A stretch of DNA of 64,000 bases from Pelomyxa schiedti (lineage: Eukaryota > Protista > Evosea): positions 1-64,000 of the forward strand of contig JAHLWZ010000797.1 in NCBI GenBank assembly GCA_020536535.1, in the 5' to 3' direction. The notes under the pieces are model-generated. The model did no database searches. It was given only the letters and a program-made list of their open reading frames with translations, and was not told the DNA's origin. This document shows positions 473 to 44,700 of this stretch, piece by piece. Both the position numbers and the translations under genes were made by a program. The first letter of the stretch is position 1. Every line of letters begins with the position of its first letter.

Positions 473-3400
473 TTATAATTTCTCTACTGTTCCGGTGGTG
501 CCGTCGATTCTGAGGGTTACGCCGGTGCGGATGAATGTGGTGTCAGAGGCAGCACCTTGGACAGACACCACGGCTGGGATTCCGTACTCGCGGGCAACAA
601 CGGATCCGTGTGACAAGAACCCCCCGGCCTCAGTGACGAGGCCTGCCGCTGCTAGGAATAACGGGGTCCACGCTGGGTCTGTCCCTGGGCACACCAGAAT
701 GTCACCTGTTTACATTGTAATGAGTGGTAGGAGTGAAGCGAAATGGCATTCATGTATCTTTTGATTTGATTAATAGGAGGAGGATTCTGGTACCTGGTTG
801 TAGTTGTGTTTGGACGGGATCGTGTATTACACAAGCACGGCCGGTTACAATACCTGGTGAGACACCGGTTCCGAGCAACATGTTTTCGCTTGGAACTGAG
901 GTTCTTGATGCCTGTTTTGGTGTTTGTAAGGGATGACGAACTGGCGGCACCATACCGCATTGTAGAAAGCTCTTCCATCACTGAGAATGATCCTAGGCAC
1001 TTGTCTTCTCATAAGTTCGTGGTTATAGGCATCCTTTCTGCGTTTGATCAGTTCACGAATATCCTCGGTCACCAGACTGGAATTCTGTGTTAGTCTTTCA
1101 AGGTCGTCCATGTGCAAGAATTTGATGTCATCAGGGCATTCTAAAATGCCCGTGGCGGTCAGTTTTTCTCCAACAGAGTTCATGCCCTCACGCATATATC
1201 TGAGGATTTTCATGAGGTACATCTTGGGCCATTCCCTGAAGCCAAAGAAGTTTCTCACGTTGAAGGAAAGTCGCCGAACTAACTTCCCACCAAAATAGTA
1301 ACGAAGCCACCCTCCACTGGTGTTTTGTGCAGCTATTTCTTGTTCCATTGCTTGACGTGCTACATCTTCACCATGGGCAAATGTTATATCTGGGGTGGCA
1401 GATTCAGGAATGAGTATGAAACTCTTTAGTGTTGACATGACGGGAGCGGGATCCTCAAACCACCTCTTGACTCCAAAGTCAACTTCATTCTGACATCGAC
1501 ATCCAAAATGCTCCAAAAAAACTGAAATTCCTTTTTGAACAGGAGGTGGTAAGTCCCCGTGCACAAAGAGTTCAGTAAGTCTTTCAGGTGTCTCTGCCTG
1601 AAATAAAGACAACGAGGTATCATCACGTGAAGAGCGCATTGCTTTGGCAATACTCCACAATTCCAGATCCATTTCAGTGGTACTGTAAATAAATGATTAC
1701 AGGAGGAAAAGGCTCGATAAATTACCAGTTGTTAGGAATGCTTCTAGTGATCTTGTAGGGAAGAGTTTTGTCAAGTGCAATCTTTTCAAGTACACTGAGT
1801 GATATGAAAGAAGGAGCTGCAAAAGGAACGAGCTGTGTAAGACCCCAGGCGAGGTAGTTGGACAAGTGCTCTCTCATATATGCCCTTACTCTTGGAATAT
1901 ACTTGTAAGCATCACTATCTACTGCTGTGAGGTATTGTCTAGCGATTGAGAGTGCAGTATTGCCCTTTGCAGTAATGCGGTTACGTGTGGAAGCGGAAAA
2001 TATGAAATTGTAGATGACTTTCGGTAGAAATTTTAGCAGTGTGGACAATAGCCGAACTACTTCTCGCGCTGTGGGACCCTGTTTGCGCAATAGAATTGGT
2101 TCTTCACGTTCAAGCTCAGAAATGATACGGCAAGTAGTAGGGTCTGTTGAAGCCAAGTAATTTCGTATTATTTTCCCCCCAATGGGATTCTTGAGAATCA
2201 CATCAAGGCGCACAAATATCCGCTCGCCTGCAACTGTAAAGTAGTCTTTCTGAAGTCTCTCTTGGAGTGAAATTCCCCCGAAAAGCCCATGAGTAGCCCC
2301 GAATGCATATTTCATGACATCTTGTCCAATAGGTGTTAAAGGCTTTTGAATACATTGTAATGCTCCAAAGGAATACCACATTTTGGAAGGAGCACTTTGA
2401 GTGGGAGAATCTAGCTCCGGAACGGGATATAACGAGGTTATTGCTCGTGACTGAAGCACATGAAAATAGCCATCTGTGGTCATTGCCCACTCAATATCCT
2501 GTGGCGTTCCATATTCTTTTTGAATGAAGCTACACATTCGCGAAAGGTCCAAAACCTGTGAGTCTGTGAGTGACTTATCTTCTGGAAAGCTGTTGGGTTC
2601 TTCAGCAATGCCACTGCCGTCCTTACGACTGAGGGCCACAATTCGTTTGGAACCCGTAGTGCTGGATTCAATTCGCCACTTTCGTGAGTCTACTACAAAG
2701 TGGTCAGGTTCTACCTTGCCTGACACAAGTGCTTCTCCCAGGCCAAAAGTGGAATCAATGACAATTTCAAACCTGTTTCCACTGACCGGGTTGGCTGTGA
2801 ATGCAACTCCTGAAGCGTGAGATTGTACCATTTCTTGTACAATTACAGCCATTGATGCCCCTTCATTTAATACATGATTTCTTGCCCGATACCCGGCAGC
2901 CCTTGTGTTCCACAAACTAGACCAGCACTTCACAAGCGAGTTTATCACCTGAAGTAAGTAGTAAAAAACGAAATAAAAAGAGCAATCATCAAGGCACACC
3001 TCATCTTCTCCAATGACATTCAAGTAGGTGTCATGCAAACCAGCAAACGAACAGTCTGAAGAGTCTTCAGTAGTAGCAGATGACCTGACTGCAACAGGAA
3101 CTGGATTGCCACCACTGCACAGTGTTCTATATGCCTCACAGACCTCCTTCCTTAATCCATCTGGAAGCTCACCCTAAGTACAAAAAAAAAACTGAACAAA
3201 CTCCCGAAACAGATTAAAAAGTGGGTTTTTGGTTCCACATACCTCCAGAAAAGCAGCCCTCAGTTTTTCCGCTAATAATACACTTTCTGGTGAATCGGCA
3301 TCACACTTTGGTGTACCAACACCGTCACCCTCCTTTCTCGTAATATGTGTTGATGTCGACGTCGTTGCCGTCGAGACTTCGTTTTCGGGATGCGGGTGAG

Positions 3401-35842: not shown

Positions 35843-37347
35843 ATGGCACGCGTTGCTCGCGAAGACCCAGTTTTGATCGATCGCGACATAGATCTGCTTT
35901 ACATTGGAGAGGATCTACTCACTTCGTACATTACGAACGGCGATGCGCGCCCGATCTCTTCCGCCTCTATTTCGCCGAGCGTTTCGTGTCGGAATGATGT
36001 CAAAAACAGCATCCACGTTGCGGGCCGGAAACGGCTTCCCGCAGCGGAATACGAGTCGTCGGACGACGAGGATGTGCCTTGCCCGTCTAGAAAGCGGAGC
36101 AGGAAACACACTCTCTCTAAATCCCGTCTTTTGGTCAGCAATAAATCCTCCACGGGTATCTCTTTTCCACTTTTTTCGCTTCTTGAGATTAACCTTTACG
36201 GCAGAGCTTAAACCGTCGTGGCAGGGTTACCCTTCCCAATGCGCGGTTCCGGCCGAGGCTGATGACACATACAACTCATCCAGTGAAAGCGAATCGGATC
36301 AGTCCGAGTCCGACTGCTCCACACCAGGACAGTCAACATCCGATGATGATACTGTGGCATCAGGTTCTATCACTAGACAAAACTCGCGTACGGGCCTTTG
36401 TTGTGGCCGAGCTTCAGCTGCTAACCCAGCTCCAGCTGTTCCAGGAGAAGCATGTGAGGAAAGCGACGCTGGTGAGACTTACGATGAGGACGGAGAGGCC
36501 GATAACTTTGGGGAAAGCGATGATGACTCAAGCTCTGAATCTGGCTTGACCAACGTACCCTTCGACCCCTACCTGTTCATCAAGAACTTGCCGCCTCATG
36601 AGTCTTTAAGTCAACCTCCAGTTGTTCTTCCTCCCCCGGCAGCTTCGTCTCCCAAAGCCACTCTGGTCTTGGACCTTGACGAAACTCTGGCGCACTCATC
36701 CTTGGAATCTATTCCTGGCGAGGAACTGGTCTTCAACGTCACAATCAGTGGCAAAGACTATACTATGCACGCCAGGAAAAGGCCACATCTTGAGCAATTC
36801 TTACTTGCTGTATCAGCGATGTTTGAGGTGGTAGTGTTCACTGCCTCACAGGCTGAATACGCCAGCAAGTTGCTCGACCACATTGATCCTCAAAATCGCA
36901 TCTTCACGTAATACTCCTCACAAGCACTCTTTATGTTCTCTTTGATGTTCCTCTTCTACTCTTGTGTTGTGCCTTCCCCCTCTCTTACCCCCATTGGTAA
37001 TTAGACATCGTATCTACCGTGAAGGCTGCGTGTTTGTTGGTGGGAACTATCTCAAGGACTTGACTGTACTGGGACGAGACATGTCCCATGTCGTCATCAT
37101 TGATAATTCCCCCCACGTTTTTGGATACCAGGTAGCATATCCATTGTTAAATTACCCATCGATCTACCCGAGCACCTAGATGGATAATGGTGTTCCTATT
37201 CTGAGCTTTACTGACTGCAACGAAGACACTGAGCTTTTGAAGCTCTTACCTCTTCTTAAAGTCTTGTCTTCTGCGGACGACGTAAGGCCAATTTTGCGCT
37301 CCACATATGAAATGTACAAGCGCGTTGAGGACGCCGACTCCCTGTAA
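35843..37347 (+). CDS. CTDSPL2: CTD small phosphatase-like 2 (NIF/FCP1-type HAD phosphatase), spliced
   Basis: [77 protein letters not shown]. Confidence 0.9.
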
Positions 37348-37504: not shown

Positions 37505-38714
37505 CTATGTCTTTTTCCCTTTGGGCTTGGAAGGGGGGGCAGTCATTTTACGGATGTGGTCTCGTGACCGTAAGTCAGCCTGTCTGATTGGCTCTGGGAT
37601 CCTAACCTTGCATGTCACTAGCGTGAGAGATACTGCAGTGTCCAAAGAAACTAAGTGCCCAGGTGAAACGTAGAGGGCCTTGTTGCAACCATTCGGGGGT
37701 CGGACTATCTGTGAAAGAGAAGTTACGTTGAATTTGCAATAGAAGTTGAACATACAGCACCCAGAGTGGTTCCGGAGTTTCCTACTAGAACGGCATGAGA
37801 TCCGGGTGATTGGCATTGTGTCTGGAAAATCTGGTCACATTCATCAATCCCGACACCATCCACAAGCATAGTTTTCTAGCAATCAGATTAGAAACTTTTG
37901 TGCGGGTCAATGAGAAACTCACCTTGGCCACCCCCACAGTTGGAATGTTAGCAAGTACTCCAAGGTGACTGGCTAAGCCAAACCCTGATGGTTGTTATTA
38001 TCGAGGAGTGGGAAATTTAGGCAGACCGCGGGGGTGAAGAATTCCATTTCCATCTACAAGAAACACCTTCAATAATAAATTAGAGAACAAGTAACTGAAG
38101 GATTGTACCTGTGGCAATAGGTCCGGTTTTGTTGCCCTGAGTTCTTCAATCATGGGCAACAATAAAGGAGCTTCCCTGAACGCAAGAAATCCACTTATGT
38201 AAGGTGCTGTCAGTTTCACCATGGAGTAAGCTTCGTAAACTACCTGTAAATAATGAGGACAATAACTACGTAGATTGTATTCAAATAGGTTGCTCGTAAC
38301 CTTCAATGCAGGATAGGACAGTACAACAATAGAAGCACAAGCATCAACGGGGCTTCCTTTAACGAAACTGATATCAGTTCCCTTGATACTTTCTGTTCAG
38401 TTCCGCACGGTGCGAATTTGCAATAACGAATAGAGACTCACCCCTATGAGCCGCAGATTCGAGGTAGAGGGCAAAACACTCCATTCCGGATGAACGTCGT
38501 CTGTCCTCAGCCTACGTTTGAGCTCGAGTTGCTCCCTGTGTTATTAATATGTAAATCTAGCAAGTGCCACTGAAAGAAAAACACAAAAGTCGCGGCAGGG
38601 AACTAGTGTCAGAAAACGAAGGAGAGCAGGGAGAGGCTCTGCCTGCCTTTCCCAATTGGCTTTTATCTCATCAGAAGGCTGGGCCAATGTCTCACCGACC
38701 GATACCGCTGCCAT
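37505..38714 (-). CDS. ENDOV: Endonuclease V (inosine-specific nuclease), spliced
   Basis: WEREQ, GTDISF, PYISGFLAFRE, FLVDGNGILHPRGFGLASHLG, TVGVAK, YVSPGH, RIPEPIRQAD. Confidence 0.93.
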
Positions 38715-38863
38715 CTAACTACGCTCCTTTTGTTATCACAACAACCAGGAAGAAACGCTCCGTTTCCCCTTTCATCAAATCTCCACAACCAAGAAGAAAC
38801 TTGGTTTACAACCAGAGAAAAAAAAAAGAAAAAAGAACCCATCAAGGGACGACACCAAGGCAG

Positions 38864-40552
38864 ATGAGCACCGGCGACGGCATCAAGAAAGACTGTGTGA
38901 GTAGTAGTAACAGTGAGGCAGTAAGTACGGCTGGCGATCGCACGGCGAGCATTGGCGACAGTGGTGCGGGTGGCGCGCAATCTCGCGATCACGATGGCGC
39001 GACCGAGATCTCTAAGGAAGGAACCACGGGCGTGAGCGGCGCTGTCGACGGCGCAGCGGCCGAGCAGCAGGACGGCGAGGCCGCCTCCGGGGCCCCGCAC
39101 GATCTTTATGCGGCAGCGCCGCGTGATGAAAACGCCGACTGGGGACCCACCACCAGTGAAAATTGCTGGGAGGCTCAGTCTGTGGAATCTTCCGACCGCT
39201 GGGGACGTTTCTGTGTAGATGAGGACGGCGACGCTGTTGGGCCTGGCGGGGAAGACTACGACGAATGGGATTACTTGGACTCGAAAGCGGGCGCCATTCT
39301 TGGAACCCTGGGATTCGGTCCTGTGGAGGCCTCCCCTGCCGCTGAGACTCAATCGGTTCTCTCCCCCTTTACACGACTGGTCTCTTTGCCAACATGACTG
39401 GTTGAGTACACCCTTTAACTCAGTTCCCCAGGCTCATCTTGCTACTTGTGTTGTCCTTCACCCTCCTCTTCCAACTGCTTGTGCACGAGGGGGAGCAAAT
39501 GCTCTTCGATCGTTTGCCCAGTCTTGTGGGTGCACCCGGCCTACAAAAGCTAAATATGCCTATCACTCAAATAATCGGTTCCTTGGGTGGGCTGCTGTAA
39601 GTTTATCTCCCACTAAATTCATTAGCAATTCCATTTGAGGGTTTTATAATTTTAATAAAAATCAGGTGCTCTTTGCTACACCGGAACAAGCTGGTGATGC
39701 AGTTACCAAACTCCGCGCTTCAGGAGCGGATGCGACAATGGCAGAAGACTGGGAATATCAGCACCTCTTCGTCAAAAAACATCGTAGAACACTCGATACA
39801 ACAACCTTTCTTGATCAGGGTACACCGGATCCACCACTCTCGACTACATCATGTGCTACTGTTACGACTGCACCCCCTCAATTAACCTTGAATGAGTGTT
39901 TGAAGGCCGTACCTGGTACCCTAGCCCACTCAGAATGTGCAATTCGTTAACAGACTTTACAGATCTAATGGCACAAACATTCTTTGGCATAGACTTTGAG
40001 TGTGTATGCGCAATGAAAGGTTTGGCTGATGTATCTTTATGAGGTACTCAATAGGGTTTTTTTTTTAGGGGGAGTGTGCCTTCCAAACGAAATAGGAGTT
40101 CAGTCATTCAACCTTAAAGAGAGATTCTCGTGGTTTAACAGTGGTACACTCTGTGCTCCTACTGCGGCACCTTTTTTCCACTGTCTGATTAAACAAAAAT
40201 CTGTTCCTCCCCAGTAGTTTCCATCATCCTGCAGAAGATTGAAGGTAACCTTTGCAGGTATTTACAGACATCGATCCATACTGAGAGGCATTTACATGGA
40301 ATACCCTTAAACTGCACGTATAACACCCCGCACAGTAGTATTTCCCTCAACATTGGACCTAAGGAGTGCAGAGGGTGACGTGCGGCAAATTTGGACCAAC
40401 TTGACCACTTTCCTTCAATCACATTGTTCACGTGACCCAATCCTATTTGCCAAAGACTGCACTACTGAAAAGTATGGTGTTGTTGTGGAAATCACTCTCA
40501 TATAAGCTAGGGCATGTCTGAAGTGGCTTGCTGATGCTATTGGTTTCTAGCC

Positions 40553-40584
<32 letters not shown>

Positions 40585-41168
40585 CAAAAATAAAGAAAAA
40601 AGGAAAGCTGACTCTTGTTGTAGGAGAAGAAGATACACTCTCAAAGCGAGTATTCGAGCTTGAAGACCTTGTCACTATTGTATTGAGGGAGAAGAGCATT
40701 ACAATCGATCCAACAACAACGAGAAGATTTCTGTCAATACATTTTGGGTGTGAAGCCGACGCGTCTAGGAAGTAAGTTCACTTCACAGCTTCTTTTCACT
40801 TACCAACCAATAGATGCACGTGGCACTCTGAAAATTCTCTGAACCACGCGTGGCACTGTGCACTTGCAGATGCTCGTGCCATAGGATCGTGCATCCCGGC
40901 AATAGTACGGCAAGCCTCCGAGTTGGGAACTGCTGCAGGCCTCGATCCATCTCCCCTTGATCTAGAGATAATGCAATACCTGAAAGATAACCCCCCGGCT
41001 GTTGACGATGCCCCAGACTGGGGTGCCTCAGAATGGGGTAGTGTGGTTCCAGTAACAGACAGTGCCACCCAAGAACCTCCTGACGATGACGATGACAATG
41101 ACAATGAGGAGTCACCAAACAACACACCAACTACAGAACACAAGAGTGAAAAGAACTCTGGTGAGTAA
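38864..41168 (+). CDS. Maelstrom (MAEL)-domain protein with N-terminal RRM-like domain and DEDDh-type motifs, spliced
   Basis: Spliced translation: RRM-like FLGWAA-VLFATPEQAGDAVTKL; FFGIDFECVC..CLPNEIGVQSFNLKE, FFHCLIKQKSVPPQY..HLHGIP, ILFAKD..EKACLKWLA, VFELEDLV, CTWHSENSLNHAWHCALADA. All joins use GT-AG. Confidence 0.8.
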
Positions 41169-41452
41169 AACACATCCCAACAGTAAATGCTTGTGATTAT
41201 GTCGAGAATAAGAAAAAACACCATTTGTAACCGTGGATTCCCTACAAAACCACCTTTTAACTTCAAATGGGGACGGGAGGGCCGCTTAGGTGCGCTCATC
41301 CCAGGAACGACTTGCGTTGATCATGGTTTTGGCGGGAGCTCCACTCTTTCCCGTTATGGCCGGAAATCACTGTTTAGAAAAGGAAATCGTAACTTATGCT
41401 AAACAAAGTTACTTTTGGACACCACCACGCGCCACCACAAAAACATCCAGCG

Positions 41453-41739
41453 ATGGCTACATCATCAACCAGCGGGCTCTCGGCCAGCGCACGCCGCAAC
41501 GCCCCGGGCGTGGGATTTACCGCCGCAGCGCAGCCGCCCTTCCCCGGGGCGCCGCCGCTGCCCCCGCCGCCCACCCCCTCGGTCACCTCGCAGCTGTCCT
41601 TCCTGCCCCTCAGCAACACCCCCCTCACGAGCGCCACCACTTCTTCCTCGTCGCCGTCGTCCCAGGCTGTTCCCCCCCCTGCCTATGCGGTGGTGGGGGG
41701 GGAACCGTCGCCCGCCCCGCCGCCGTCGTCGTCGTGCTC

Positions 41740-41774
<35 letters not shown>

Positions 41775-44700
41775 GCGGGGCGGTGGTCCACCAGTCGCAG
41801 CCTACCACGACGACGTGCTGGGGCGGGGACGTGGCGGGGTGGAGGCAGGGGGTGCTGGGGGCGCTGACGAGGCTGTCGCGCAAGCACACGCAAGCCACTG
41901 CAATGCACGAATTGGAGAAGGCCGTCGAACAACTGGACGCAACCACACTACACTTGTTTATGGTAGCCACTCTTTTTCATTTTTCATTTTTTTTTATTTT
42001 GTACTTGGGAATTTCTTTTTTTTTTTTTTATATATGATTAGCTCTTTCTTTTTTTGTTTTTTTTTTTTCCTTCTTCTTGAACCAGCACCTGATAGTTTCC
42101 AACAGGGAATTGTGTTAGACGTAGGTCCAAATCAGTTACCCCCAAGTAAAGAAGTTGTACGACTAGTTGGCATTGCAGCACAGTGCCATCATAGCTCTTT
42201 GTCTCAATATGTTCCCAGAATGCTTACATTTCTTGTGAAAAGGATCAAGGTATCCACACCACTTAAATGTATTTATTCTCACTAGTCATGAAGGAAGCTC
42301 CAACGGCTCAAATTAGAGAAGCTTGTGTTGAGACATCTGGATTAATAGCAAAGCATATACCCCCGTACATTGGCAGAAATCCACCACTGGATTCTGCTTT
42401 TGTACTTTTCTTTAAACCACTACTTTCACTGCTTGGAGAGCAAGTATCCAAAAATTCTTAGTAAAGCGGTGCGTGCTTTTTGACACCTCACAGGACAGGT
42501 CCATCCAAACTACAACAGCACAGTGCATTGCGGAGATGGCGGTCTATTGCAATATCGGTTAGGTTACTATTTGGGAAGTCTTTACTTAATTTGTGGAATA
42601 GATTTACTTTTGAATTGTGTTGAGAAGCTTGTGTCTTCGCTTATACAAAGACTCTCGAATCCTGTCACGCATGCGCATGCTGCTATTATTTCATGCATTG
42701 CTAAAATAATGGAGGTATTCCTTCCGGTTCTGCCACTCTGGGATCGAAACTGTCATGGTAACTTAGGCTAAAACCCCCATAAGGTTATCAATGAAAGTGG
42801 ACTAGAATATGTGCCTCAAGTTATTTCTGCGTTTCTCGAGTCGCTCACACACTCCGACTGGTCAACAAGAAAAGCGGCTGCTGATGGCATATATTTGTTA
42901 TGCATTAAGTTGGGCCCTGCTATGCAACCTTTTAAGGTTGGACTTGGCAAAGTTTTATCGTCTACTAATAACTTAAACAGGATACCATTGTGGAAACCTT
43001 GCTAAAATGTCGCTTTGATAAAGTTTTCCTCCCAGTTTTTACTTGTGGAAAGTTAATACATCTAGGTGCCTCCTGTGAGGGAAGCCATTGGCTTGGGACT
43101 TCAGTTCTTCAATGTAATCCCACAACAACAGTCCAACTACTATCAATCTACATTGAGAAGAGGCACGCTTCGTACTTCAAACCTTACAGGGGAAGATGTC
43201 TGCACAGATTATGGGTTTTGCATGCCTTTTTTGTACTCTAGTTTCCTTAGTTTTGACAGGACTACAAGACACTCTCAACGACCTGCATCAAAGGGGGTTC
43301 CATCTACTTCAGCTTCCATACGTACAAATGCAACAGCCTCGAAATCTGCTGCCACTAATAGAATGTCGTTGAGAGAAAGGCTTGGTGTTAGTGGTGCAAA
43401 AAAAAACGACTGGGAAATTGTGATTGTTGAGCCACCTCCCCGAAAAACTGGTGCAGGGGAGCCACCAACCTATGGAGACAATCAAAATTCAGACCCAAAT
43501 GAGGTTGTGTCAAATGATGGAAACCCAGCTGAGGAAGAAGCAAAACAAGACAGTCCTATTACACCAAATAATGACGAGCCTTATGGCGATTTGTGTGACG
43601 AAGATGACACCAAAATTGATGTTCAGTGTCAAAATGAGAATGAATTAGTGGATGAGGAGCTACTGGATGATCAAGCGACTGACGAAGGCACAAAGAAAGG
43701 TGAAGCACCCTTCAGCAAACCCGAAGTAGAGAGTAAGGGATATGAGACCCACCAAAAAGGTGACAGAGATGACCTTAGTGAGGAAAATGCGTCTCCTCAA
43801 AGTAATGCTGAAACCCGACCTGCCGCTACAGCAGAGAATTCTAAAAGTGACCTTTCTCAAGGAAACGGGATAGACCGCTATGCAGATTGGGACGAGTTCA
43901 TTGACGAAGCGATAGAATCTCCCCAGCTAGAGGAAGAAACACTCCCCTCAGATTCGCAAGTCACATGCAACCCACAGAACTTTGAAACCAACCCGGAAGA
44001 TCTGGTTGAAATTGACGATGTCGAACGAGAATTAGAATTGAATTTGGCTGAGCAAGACTTATCAGAAGATAGAAATGAGAATGATAGACAACAAGTACTG
44101 ACTCAAAACAACTTGCAATACAACATGCATCCCGTACAACAATCTGAGAAGCAAGATTTTCACAGCAAAGTATTTCGTACTAATCTTTATATTTTGTTTT
44201 GACAAACAAAATAGGGTGGCATGAAAAGTATGGTCCCTAATTCACAGTACCAGGTACTTCACTACACCATTATTAAGTTCTGACTAGGCAATAAAAGTTC
44301 ATTCAAAGGAATCCAGAACGAGGGAATGCCATTTCACAGCCGAGACACGTTCAGGCAAGTACATCGATGAAAAGTGCACCAAGGGCGCGCACAGAACCCA
44401 GTCAAGCTGGCAATTTAACAAAAAACCCACCCAAACCCACTCAAATGGATGCCAGCACACCAAGATCCTATGTTCCACCACTTGCAAATAGGCCAGCCCA
44501 TAAATCCCTGGCACCTTCATATAAAGGGCTCACTAATTCTGTTGCCCCTAGAGTGCAATCACATACCCGACCGTTACATCACCCAAAAGTTCTCATCCAA
44601 CCAGGATCTCAGTTTTCCTCAAAATCTGTAGCAACAGAGCATAAAAAAGTCCCGTACGTTCCTCCCCCACTGCGGCACACAGAAAGCACAATCAAACATA

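Follow-up and report, generated by a model that had tools for sequence, protein, structure and literature searches.

Animal Maelstrom is an essential factor of the PIWI-interacting RNA (piRNA) pathway whose molecular job is still debated, and to our knowledge genuine nuclease activity has been shown only for its protist relatives with a MAEL domain, whose cellular role is almost unknown. The domain and its zinc-site set of residues (EHHCHC, or ECHC) were defined by Zhang 2008, and both kept and lost versions of the acidic set have been described in the Entamoeba MAEL family (PMC2628886). An Entamoeba MAEL protein with DEDD and ECHC residues functions as an exoribonuclease that depends on Mg/Mn, whereas its Bombyx counterpart is inactive (Chen 2015, PMC4408791). 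Protist MAEL domains that combine the two sets, one of them biochemically active, are in other words already known, and the same literature bears out an earlier note on the DNA discussed here, made from its letters alone, which had stated that protist MAEL domains such as Entamoeba's keep the acidic residues (PMC4408791). Our subject is a 64,000-nucleotide stretch from Pelomyxa schiedti (assembly GCA_020536535.1, contig JAHLWZ010000797.1, positions 1 to 64,000 of the forward strand; 'the window' below), and within it the locus 38864-41168, which, taken as a whole, we read with rather more confidence than doubt as a spliced protist gene for a MAEL-type RNA nuclease with a zinc site, a D-E-E-D-h catalytic site and a probable RRM-like domain (RRM, RNA-recognition motif).

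The locus is a real spliced protist gene. Two single-cell RNA-seq runs of one sample (X1 and X2) each gave one assembled contig on it, and each of these contigs aligns as eight pieces, beginning at 39556 or 39561 and reaching 41191 or 41134. Eight introns on the plus strand (39597-39665, 39916-39962, 40020-40068, 40214-40257, 40318-40363, 40472-40510, 40543-40623 and 40772-40813) join the exons between 39556 and 41191 in a single open frame; once small shifts within repeated letters are allowed for, each of the eight measures 39-81 nt and is of the GT..AG type, seven of the junctions being aligned directly and the intron 40543-40623 (81 nt, with an A19 tract) being placed from the coordinates of the contig pieces. 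Because a DNA run of the same study covers the locus without a gap, what the contigs skip must be introns rather than differences between assemblies. Exon-wise translation with carried phases meets no stop across the junctions until the TAA at 41166-41168, and the short open pieces seen in a three-frame translation, which switch frame every 50-150 bases, are just what would be expected of a gene with many small introns. The RNA contigs, the GT..AG introns and the open frame thus uphold the earlier picture of a gene spread over many small exons; the RNA-seq check that had been proposed for those exons comes out positive from 39556 onwards, but exon 1, intron 1 and most of exon 2 are uncovered. 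With the first exon included as we place it, the encoded protein would have about 611 residues.

The MAEL part lies in exons 4 to 10, all on the plus strand. Exon 4 (39963-40019) holds the predicted MAEL strand beta1, FFGIDFEC, with the ExoI Asp (39992-39994) and Glu (39998-40000); exon 5 (40069-40213) holds PNEIG, with the zinc-site Glu (40089-40091), and FFHCLI..PP, with a His at 40179-40181; exon 6 (40258-40317) holds HLHGIPLN and its conserved His (40295-40297); and exon 7 (40364-40471) runs through a putative helix and the strand PILFAK to a terminal TTE, whose Glu (40467-40469) is the proposed ExoII acid, all four exons being delimited by RNA junctions. Exon 8 (40511-40542), represented by 31 letters of both RNA contigs, encodes ACLKWLADAI, exon 9 (40624-40771, in the RNA contigs) encodes the middle of the domain, and exon 10 (40814-41168, with RNA to 41191) encodes CTWH (Cys 40815, His 40824), WHCALADAR (His 40854, Cys 40857, Asp 40869-40871) and an acidic tail that ends at the TAA. 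In the exon translations all six residues of the EHHCHC set stand in order (E 40089, H 40179, H 40295, C 40815, H 40824, C 40857), and FFGIDFEC, PNEIG, FFHCLI, HLHGIP, CLKWLA and CTWH..WHCALAD follow one another along RNA-supported exons. The MAEL hallmarks and the Glu/Cys/His/Cys zinc set that the earlier note had picked out are therefore where it had put them, as are the Asp and Glu of its IDFE (39992-40000) and the His (40854) and Asp (40869) of its ExoIII-like HCALAD.

What ties these exons to Maelstrom is a set of paralogues in the same genome. A six-frame scan with the Pfam Maelstrom profile (PF13017, gathering cut-off 22 bits) found three other loci, on C526 (59.6 bits), C277 (26.7 bits) and C529 (17.8 bits, below the cut-off), and a small profile made from the N-terminal motif of the C277 and C526 copies led to two further ones, on C213 and C870. 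Pieces of the C277 copy (21.7 and 13.8 bits) and of the C213 copy (17 bits) match PF13017 at model positions 7-38 and 167-196, and exon 5 of the window gene aligns with those segments of C213, C277 and C526 that match positions 7-38. The window exons are collinear with the paralogues on C213, C277, C526 and C870, and several intron positions are shared with C213 and C277. When exon-wise local alignment scores were compared with 2000 shuffles, z values of 12.6, 10.7, 6.4, 10.4, 4.2, 8.9 and 6.4 were obtained against C213 (sum z 19.4, which covers nine pairs and so also a wrong-frame pair at z -0.4 and a weak tail pair at z 0.8) and of 7.9, 9.3, 7.3, 2.2, 3.6, -0.7 and 5.6 against C277 (sum z 13.1), and none of the 2000 shuffles reached either sum. 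For example, exon 2 is 40% identical to its C213 counterpart (z 12.6), exon 9 aligns with C213 at z 8.9 and exon 10 with C277 and C213 at z 5.6-6.4; over 10-13 residues exon 4 shares 77% identity with C213 and 70% with C277, and the HGIPL of exon 6 is common to the window, C277, C213 and C870. Motifs that recur in the same order in C213 and C277 are more than chance would produce, and because the window exons are collinear with the Pfam-recognised genes on C277 and C213, the window gene is, by transitive homology at the level of sequence, a member of the Maelstrom paralogue family.

The paralogues have features of their own. That on C213 (minus strand, about 265-2409), the closest, starts with an RRM-like exon, no long acidic first exon being seen; it keeps DFE, ATE-KKC and FHCAFSDAR, has exons 4 and 5 fused, and may contain a 12-nt micro-exon (LVFN) between LGWAA and the rest of the RRM-like domain. 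The C277 copy (minus strand, 1146-3294) also keeps the catalytic set, has a 352-codon N-terminal open reading frame (ORF) rich in Ser, Thr and Ala, and is broken by a run of N in its 3' part. On C526 (1339-2187) an intron-free MAEL paralogue lies behind a Pro-rich exon and has lost four of the five nuclease residues, and on C870 (plus strand, about 1486-1990) there is a MAEL-like paralogue with IPIEIGICAF, RRVHGIPI and CISWLARQAG. The weak MAEL C-terminal match on C529 (about 18 bits) falls within what appear to be three tandem copies of a unit of about 850 bases, and it may be a degraded or repeated fragment.

The nuclease site differs at one position from the one that had been proposed. The ExoI pair is the same DFE in the window, C213, C277 and Entamoeba, and the ExoIII His-x4-Asp (H 40854, D 40869-40871) is kept in C213 and C277 but not in C526, which has Arg for the His. 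At the ExoII position stands Glu 40467-40469, not Asp, with the conserved Cys of the CLKWL helix three residues further on (TTE-KAC in the window, ATE-KKC in C213, HTE-ILC in C277); this is the offset at which Entamoeba sequences that keep DEDHD have Asp (AGD-KKC; Zhang 2008 supplementary alignment). On this alignment the third acidic residue is most likely Glu 40467-40469, and because the aligned residue is Glu in all three copies the site is D-E-E-D-h and not strict DEDDh: of the DEDDh retention claimed earlier, the D, E, H and D are present and the ExoII Asp is replaced. The Asp of FAKD (40455-40457), which the earlier note had suggested as the third acid, was considered and rejected, the residue being Gly in both C213 and C277. 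Four of the five nuclease positions are changed in C526, which reads His-Phe-Gln, Gln and Arg there, and the window, C213 and C277, otherwise only 20-40% identical, keep the site; the family therefore holds both kept and lost versions. There is a natural precedent for Glu at motif II in nsp14 exoribonuclease, which is active and among whose relatives Glu and Asp alternate (PMC7654266), and by such analogies we would predict nuclease activity for the window protein as likely, though not assured.

In front of the MAEL domain, exons 2 and 3 encode what we consider likely to be a divergent RRM-like domain of about 80 residues. Exon 2 (39432-39596, covered by RNA over 39556-39596 only) would supply its N-terminal two thirds, from CVVLHPPLP to LGWAA, and exon 3 (39666-39915, with the junction 39596|39666 in both RNA contigs) its end (VLFATPEQAGDAVTKL), followed by a Thr/Pro-rich linker. 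A six-frame RRM_1 scan of the genome, taken to E 1e-5, listed 87 matches, all outside the window, and exons 2 and 3 and the first exon of C213 have no Pfam match. A local RRM profile was built from 19 of those 87. Against it the start of exon 3 scores 3.8 bits (E 2.3), the best of 900 open window pieces, and hhalign places residues 1-19 of exon 3 on RRM columns 48-66, the beta3-alpha2 part (P 0.0019), and the first exon of C213 on columns 1-46 (probability 70.8%, P 3.8e-5). Like window exon 2, that C213 exon closes with LGWAA and is followed by an intron in the corresponding position, and the three partial alignments fit one RRM split by an intron inside RNP1. The RNP1-like L-G-W-A-A-V-L-F, divided by the intron 39597-39665, which contains a stop, keeps the Gly, the Trp and the last Phe; the RNP2-like V-V-L-H-P-L has no aromatic residue, and for that reason RNA binding may not be of the classic kind. 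The earlier claim that an RRM takes the place of the HMG box draws indirect support from the RRM match of the C213 exon and its 40% identity to exon 2, but no window exon matches Pfam RRM_1. Pieces resembling half of the domain (35-40% identical to exon 2) also occur on C1694 (2605-2760) and C845 (14279-14413), with no MAEL exons nearby; one of the two has an in-frame TGA, and the pair may represent decayed copies or form a small family of its own. An AlphaFold2 single-sequence model of the C1694 piece was uninformative (predicted local distance difference test score, pLDDT, 44).

At the 5' end we place a putative exon 1 at 38864-39379 on the plus strand, in which an ATG opens a 172-codon acidic, low-complexity N-terminal tail with DWG (39140), RWG (39200), CWE and EWD. 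Its frame is open for 231 codons and shows strong purine-any-pyrimidine (RNY) periodicity, with purine fractions of 0.72/0.56/0.38 by codon position, and its acidic Trp-Gly character resembles that of the RNA-verified C-terminal tail. Intron 1 would then be 39380-39431 (52 nt, GT..AG), which takes frame 2 to frame 0; in an enumeration of frame-keeping GT..AG pairs, several of which could link exon 1 to exon 2, it is the shortest, and alternative donors lie at 39318, 39323 and 39356. A frame-0 Met at 39219 was rejected as the start, coding periodicity there being in frame 2. The GC content at third codon positions (GC3) is 0.62 in exon 1 and 0.29-0.45 in the other exons. The first exons of adjacent genes (38800-39400 and 41400-41950) have a GC of 0.60-0.70, against about 0.40-0.47 in the rest of the same genes, and the 5' ends of the paralogues on C526 and C277 are likewise GC-richer.

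Read in this way, the protein would run from an acidic Trp-Gly N-terminal tail through an RRM-like domain and a Thr/Pro-rich linker to an ancestral protist-type MAEL domain and a second acidic Trp-Gly tail. The MAEL domain would most likely act as the Entamoeba protein does, in Mg/Mn-dependent 3'-to-5' degradation or trimming of single-stranded RNA, at a two-metal exonuclease site presumably made up of the Asp and Glu of strand 1, the ExoII Glu and the His-x4-Asp of the last helix. The Glu/Cys/His/Cys zinc site would hold the fold together, and the RRM-like domain could supply substrate binding or a surface for a partner.

Several results weigh against this reading, and they are best judged together with the alternatives on which they bear. 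No single window exon, untrimmed or trimmed, matches PF13017, PF00929 or RRM_1 even at E 10; the PF13017 six-frame scan of the whole 52-Mb assembly missed the window locus; and phmmer against PDB sequences, with C526, exon 5 and exon 10 as queries, returned nothing relevant. Of the other searches, an exhaustive HMMER search with exon 10 against 1.84 billion representatives gave just one spurious repeat protein, a word-based search with the intron-free C526 copy found no homologue, own-genome searches with exon 5, exon 3 and a C277 exon gave self-matches only, a metagenome contig scan with a C213 exon yielded no relative, and an AlphaFold2 single-sequence model of the C526 MAEL domain was uninformative (pLDDT 43). 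We find it very improbable that the gene encodes an ordinary DEDDh exonuclease of the RNase_T/ERI-1 type in which the MAEL motifs are a coincidence: its ExoI and ExoIII motifs (IDFE, HC..DAR) do resemble those of an RNase_T-family gene on C839, but PF00929 matches 14 places in the genome, C839 included, and none on C797, C213, C277 or C526, the paralogues match PF13017 instead, and the ECHC zinc set is present, in the form of the PNEIG Glu and of a Cys-x2-His that precedes the His-Cys pair. (The C839 locus, at 39768-41172, has two consecutive PF00929 domains on one strand and is apparently a tandem classical DEDDh exonuclease gene.) A different view accepts the domain and would make it a module without catalysis that binds RNA or serves as a scaffold, as in animals, its acidic residues being leftovers or holding the fold together. 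Indeed, Bombyx MAEL is inactive yet binds single-stranded RNA (PMC4408791), C526 has clearly lost its site, so that loss does occur in this family, and the ExoII residue is Glu and not Asp, which is no guarantee of activity given that conservative Asp/Glu swaps in the Klenow exonuclease cut its activity by >96% (cited in PMC7654266). We nevertheless hold a silent domain to be unlikely, for the window, C213 and C277 retain every one of the five positions despite identities as low as those given above, the Glu is invariant, the contexts of the residues match those of the active Entamoeba enzyme, and natural D-E-E-D-h enzymes are active (PMC7654266).

The front of the protein invites two further alternatives. 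The domain of exons 2 and 3 might be something other than an RRM, either another small domain or disordered sequence with RNP1-like letters, and we rate this as somewhat unlikely. It would account for the lack of a Pfam signal and of a usable ESM Atlas match by features, for the fact that exon 2 alone gives no signal with the local RRM profile or hhalign, and for the missing RNP2 aromatic; a two-sequence profile of the window and C213, which falls in the same register, reaches only P 0.053, and C277 gives no RRM signal in its N-terminal ORF, nor do the ORFs on C1694 and C845 that resemble exon 2. What speaks for an RRM is the geometry: three independent partial alignments share one register, in which the C213 exon takes up columns 1-46 as far as the RNP1 Gly, window exon 2 finishes with the same LGWA, and exon 3 takes over at column 48; the window and C213 also share LGWAA with (V/L)(L/V)F after it. 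The second alternative is that the transcript starts near 39556 and yields a MAEL-only protein of about 360 residues from the Met at 39738-39740, exon 1 and exon 2 being untranslated or unrelated. Exon 1, intron 1 and most of exon 2 do lie outside the coverage of both RNA contigs, which begin at 39556 and 39561 and derive from that one sample; one of them has the loose letters GTACATGGG ahead of its start, which we take for the tail of a template-switch oligo, marking where that cDNA has its 5' end; and GC3 falls from 0.62 in exon 1 to 0.29 in exon 2. Single-cell cDNA is often truncated at its 5' end, however, and the protein sequence of exon 2 is conserved in the first coding exon of C213, both genes having an intron in the same position after LGWAA. 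The reading frame carries on across the junction 39596|39666, upstream of which frame 0 has no stop for 139 codons; there is coding periodicity in exon 1, and other genes of the genome also begin with GC-rich exons. A MAEL-only protein therefore seems to us a poor bet. The concern that the RRM exons might belong to a separate transcript is settled by the RNA from 39556 on, where RRM-like and MAEL exons share one transcript, but not for the part upstream, which is outside the cDNA.

Could such a protein serve a small-RNA pathway? The two acidic tails hold four WG motifs (39140 and 39200 in exon 1, and in exon 10 the DWG at 41019 and the EWG at 41034), which are too few to be called an Argonaute hook from the sequence. 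The PIWI/AGO genes that the earlier note had proposed to look for do exist, in the form of at least four loci with Piwi domains (C803, C249, C877 and C848), scoring up to 142 bits and all with introns. A role in a small-RNA pathway is a plausible suggestion. The bolder proposal is that the RRM-MAEL proteins are a family of active D-E-E-D-h exoribonucleases, docked to Argonaute/Piwi proteins through their Trp-Gly tails, which trim or clear small-RNA precursors or targets; we think this improbable as it stands, and were it true it would show the ancestral job of Maelstrom, before the nuclease was silenced and an HMG box swapped in on the way to animals.

The locus is flanked on one side by an Endonuclease V gene on the minus strand (37998-38303; PF04493, 57.8 bits), with a plus-strand gene for a NIF/FCP1-type phosphatase farther upstream (36402-36908; PF03031, 84.3 bits), and on the other side by the next gene, which starts near 41396 on the plus strand.

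We think that the locus matters for the family to which it belongs. That family, from an uncultured, free-living protist, numbers at least five paralogues; three keep the nuclease site in its Glu-at-ExoII form and at least one has lost it, so that kept and lost copies in one genome repeat the active-site switch proposed for the MAEL family as a whole. Both the window gene and C213 carry a probable RNA-binding domain in front of MAEL, and a literature search, which did not take in domain-architecture databases, found no description of an RRM-MAEL architecture. If the activity and the RRM are confirmed, these proteins would be well suited to the question of what the ancestral Maelstrom nuclease works on.

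How, then, does the window gene stand beside the systems already described? Its closest counterparts are Entamoeba histolytica EHI_192630 and its paralogues (PMC2628886, PMC4408791), which likewise combine a MAEL domain bearing the ECHC/EHHCHC set with a DnaQ-H acidic set, and which share with it the DFE of strand 1, EIG, HGI, an acid three residues before the conserved Cys and H-C-A-L-x-D-A-R; in the supplementary alignment of Zhang 2008, Entamoeba has IEIG, D-KKC and H[C]ALSDAR where the window has NEIG, TTE-KAC and HCALADAR. Entamoeba, like the genome of the window, has several paralogues, some of them without the acidic set, and the host of the window gene is probably amoebozoan. In Entamoeba, however, MAEL starts 12-42 residues from the N-terminus or is duplicated, and there is therefore no RRM-like domain in front of it; the ExoII residue is Asp and not Glu; the window protein, unlike its Entamoeba counterparts, has two acidic Trp-Gly tails; and similarity between the two is too low for word-based or phmmer searches. 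Animal Maelstrom, with its HMG box and MAEL domain (Bombyx and Drosophila structures), has the EHHCHC set in the same order, and its profile, PF13017, recognises the paralogues of the window gene, but it is without the DEDD residues and reported to be inactive or weakly endonucleolytic, it has an HMG box where the window has an RRM-like domain, and the window exons themselves reach no Pfam score. The arenavirus nucleoprotein exonuclease, cited as the nearest structural relative of MAEL (PMC7968707; note in PMC4408791) and likened to the window domain here by description, pairs a DEDDh-type site, active in arenavirus, with the same kind of ECHC zinc site, although it is viral and fused to a nucleoprotein core. 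Nidovirus nsp14 ExoN, an active 3'-5' exoribonuclease, shares the Glu at motif II (PMC7654266) and is a precedent for that residue only, since it belongs to another branch of the superfamily, has two other zinc fingers and needs a cofactor protein. The RNase_T/ERI-1 DEDDh enzymes (PF00929, as in the gene on C839) have the ExoI DFE and ExoIII letters of the H-C-x-x-D-D-A-R kind and belong to the same superfamily, but lack the CxxH...C zinc set. Set against the known MAEL proteins, what differs here is a probable RRM-like domain in at least two paralogues, a conserved ExoII Glu and two acidic Trp-Gly tails, and on the present evidence the window gene is an extension of known biology rather than a new kind of system.

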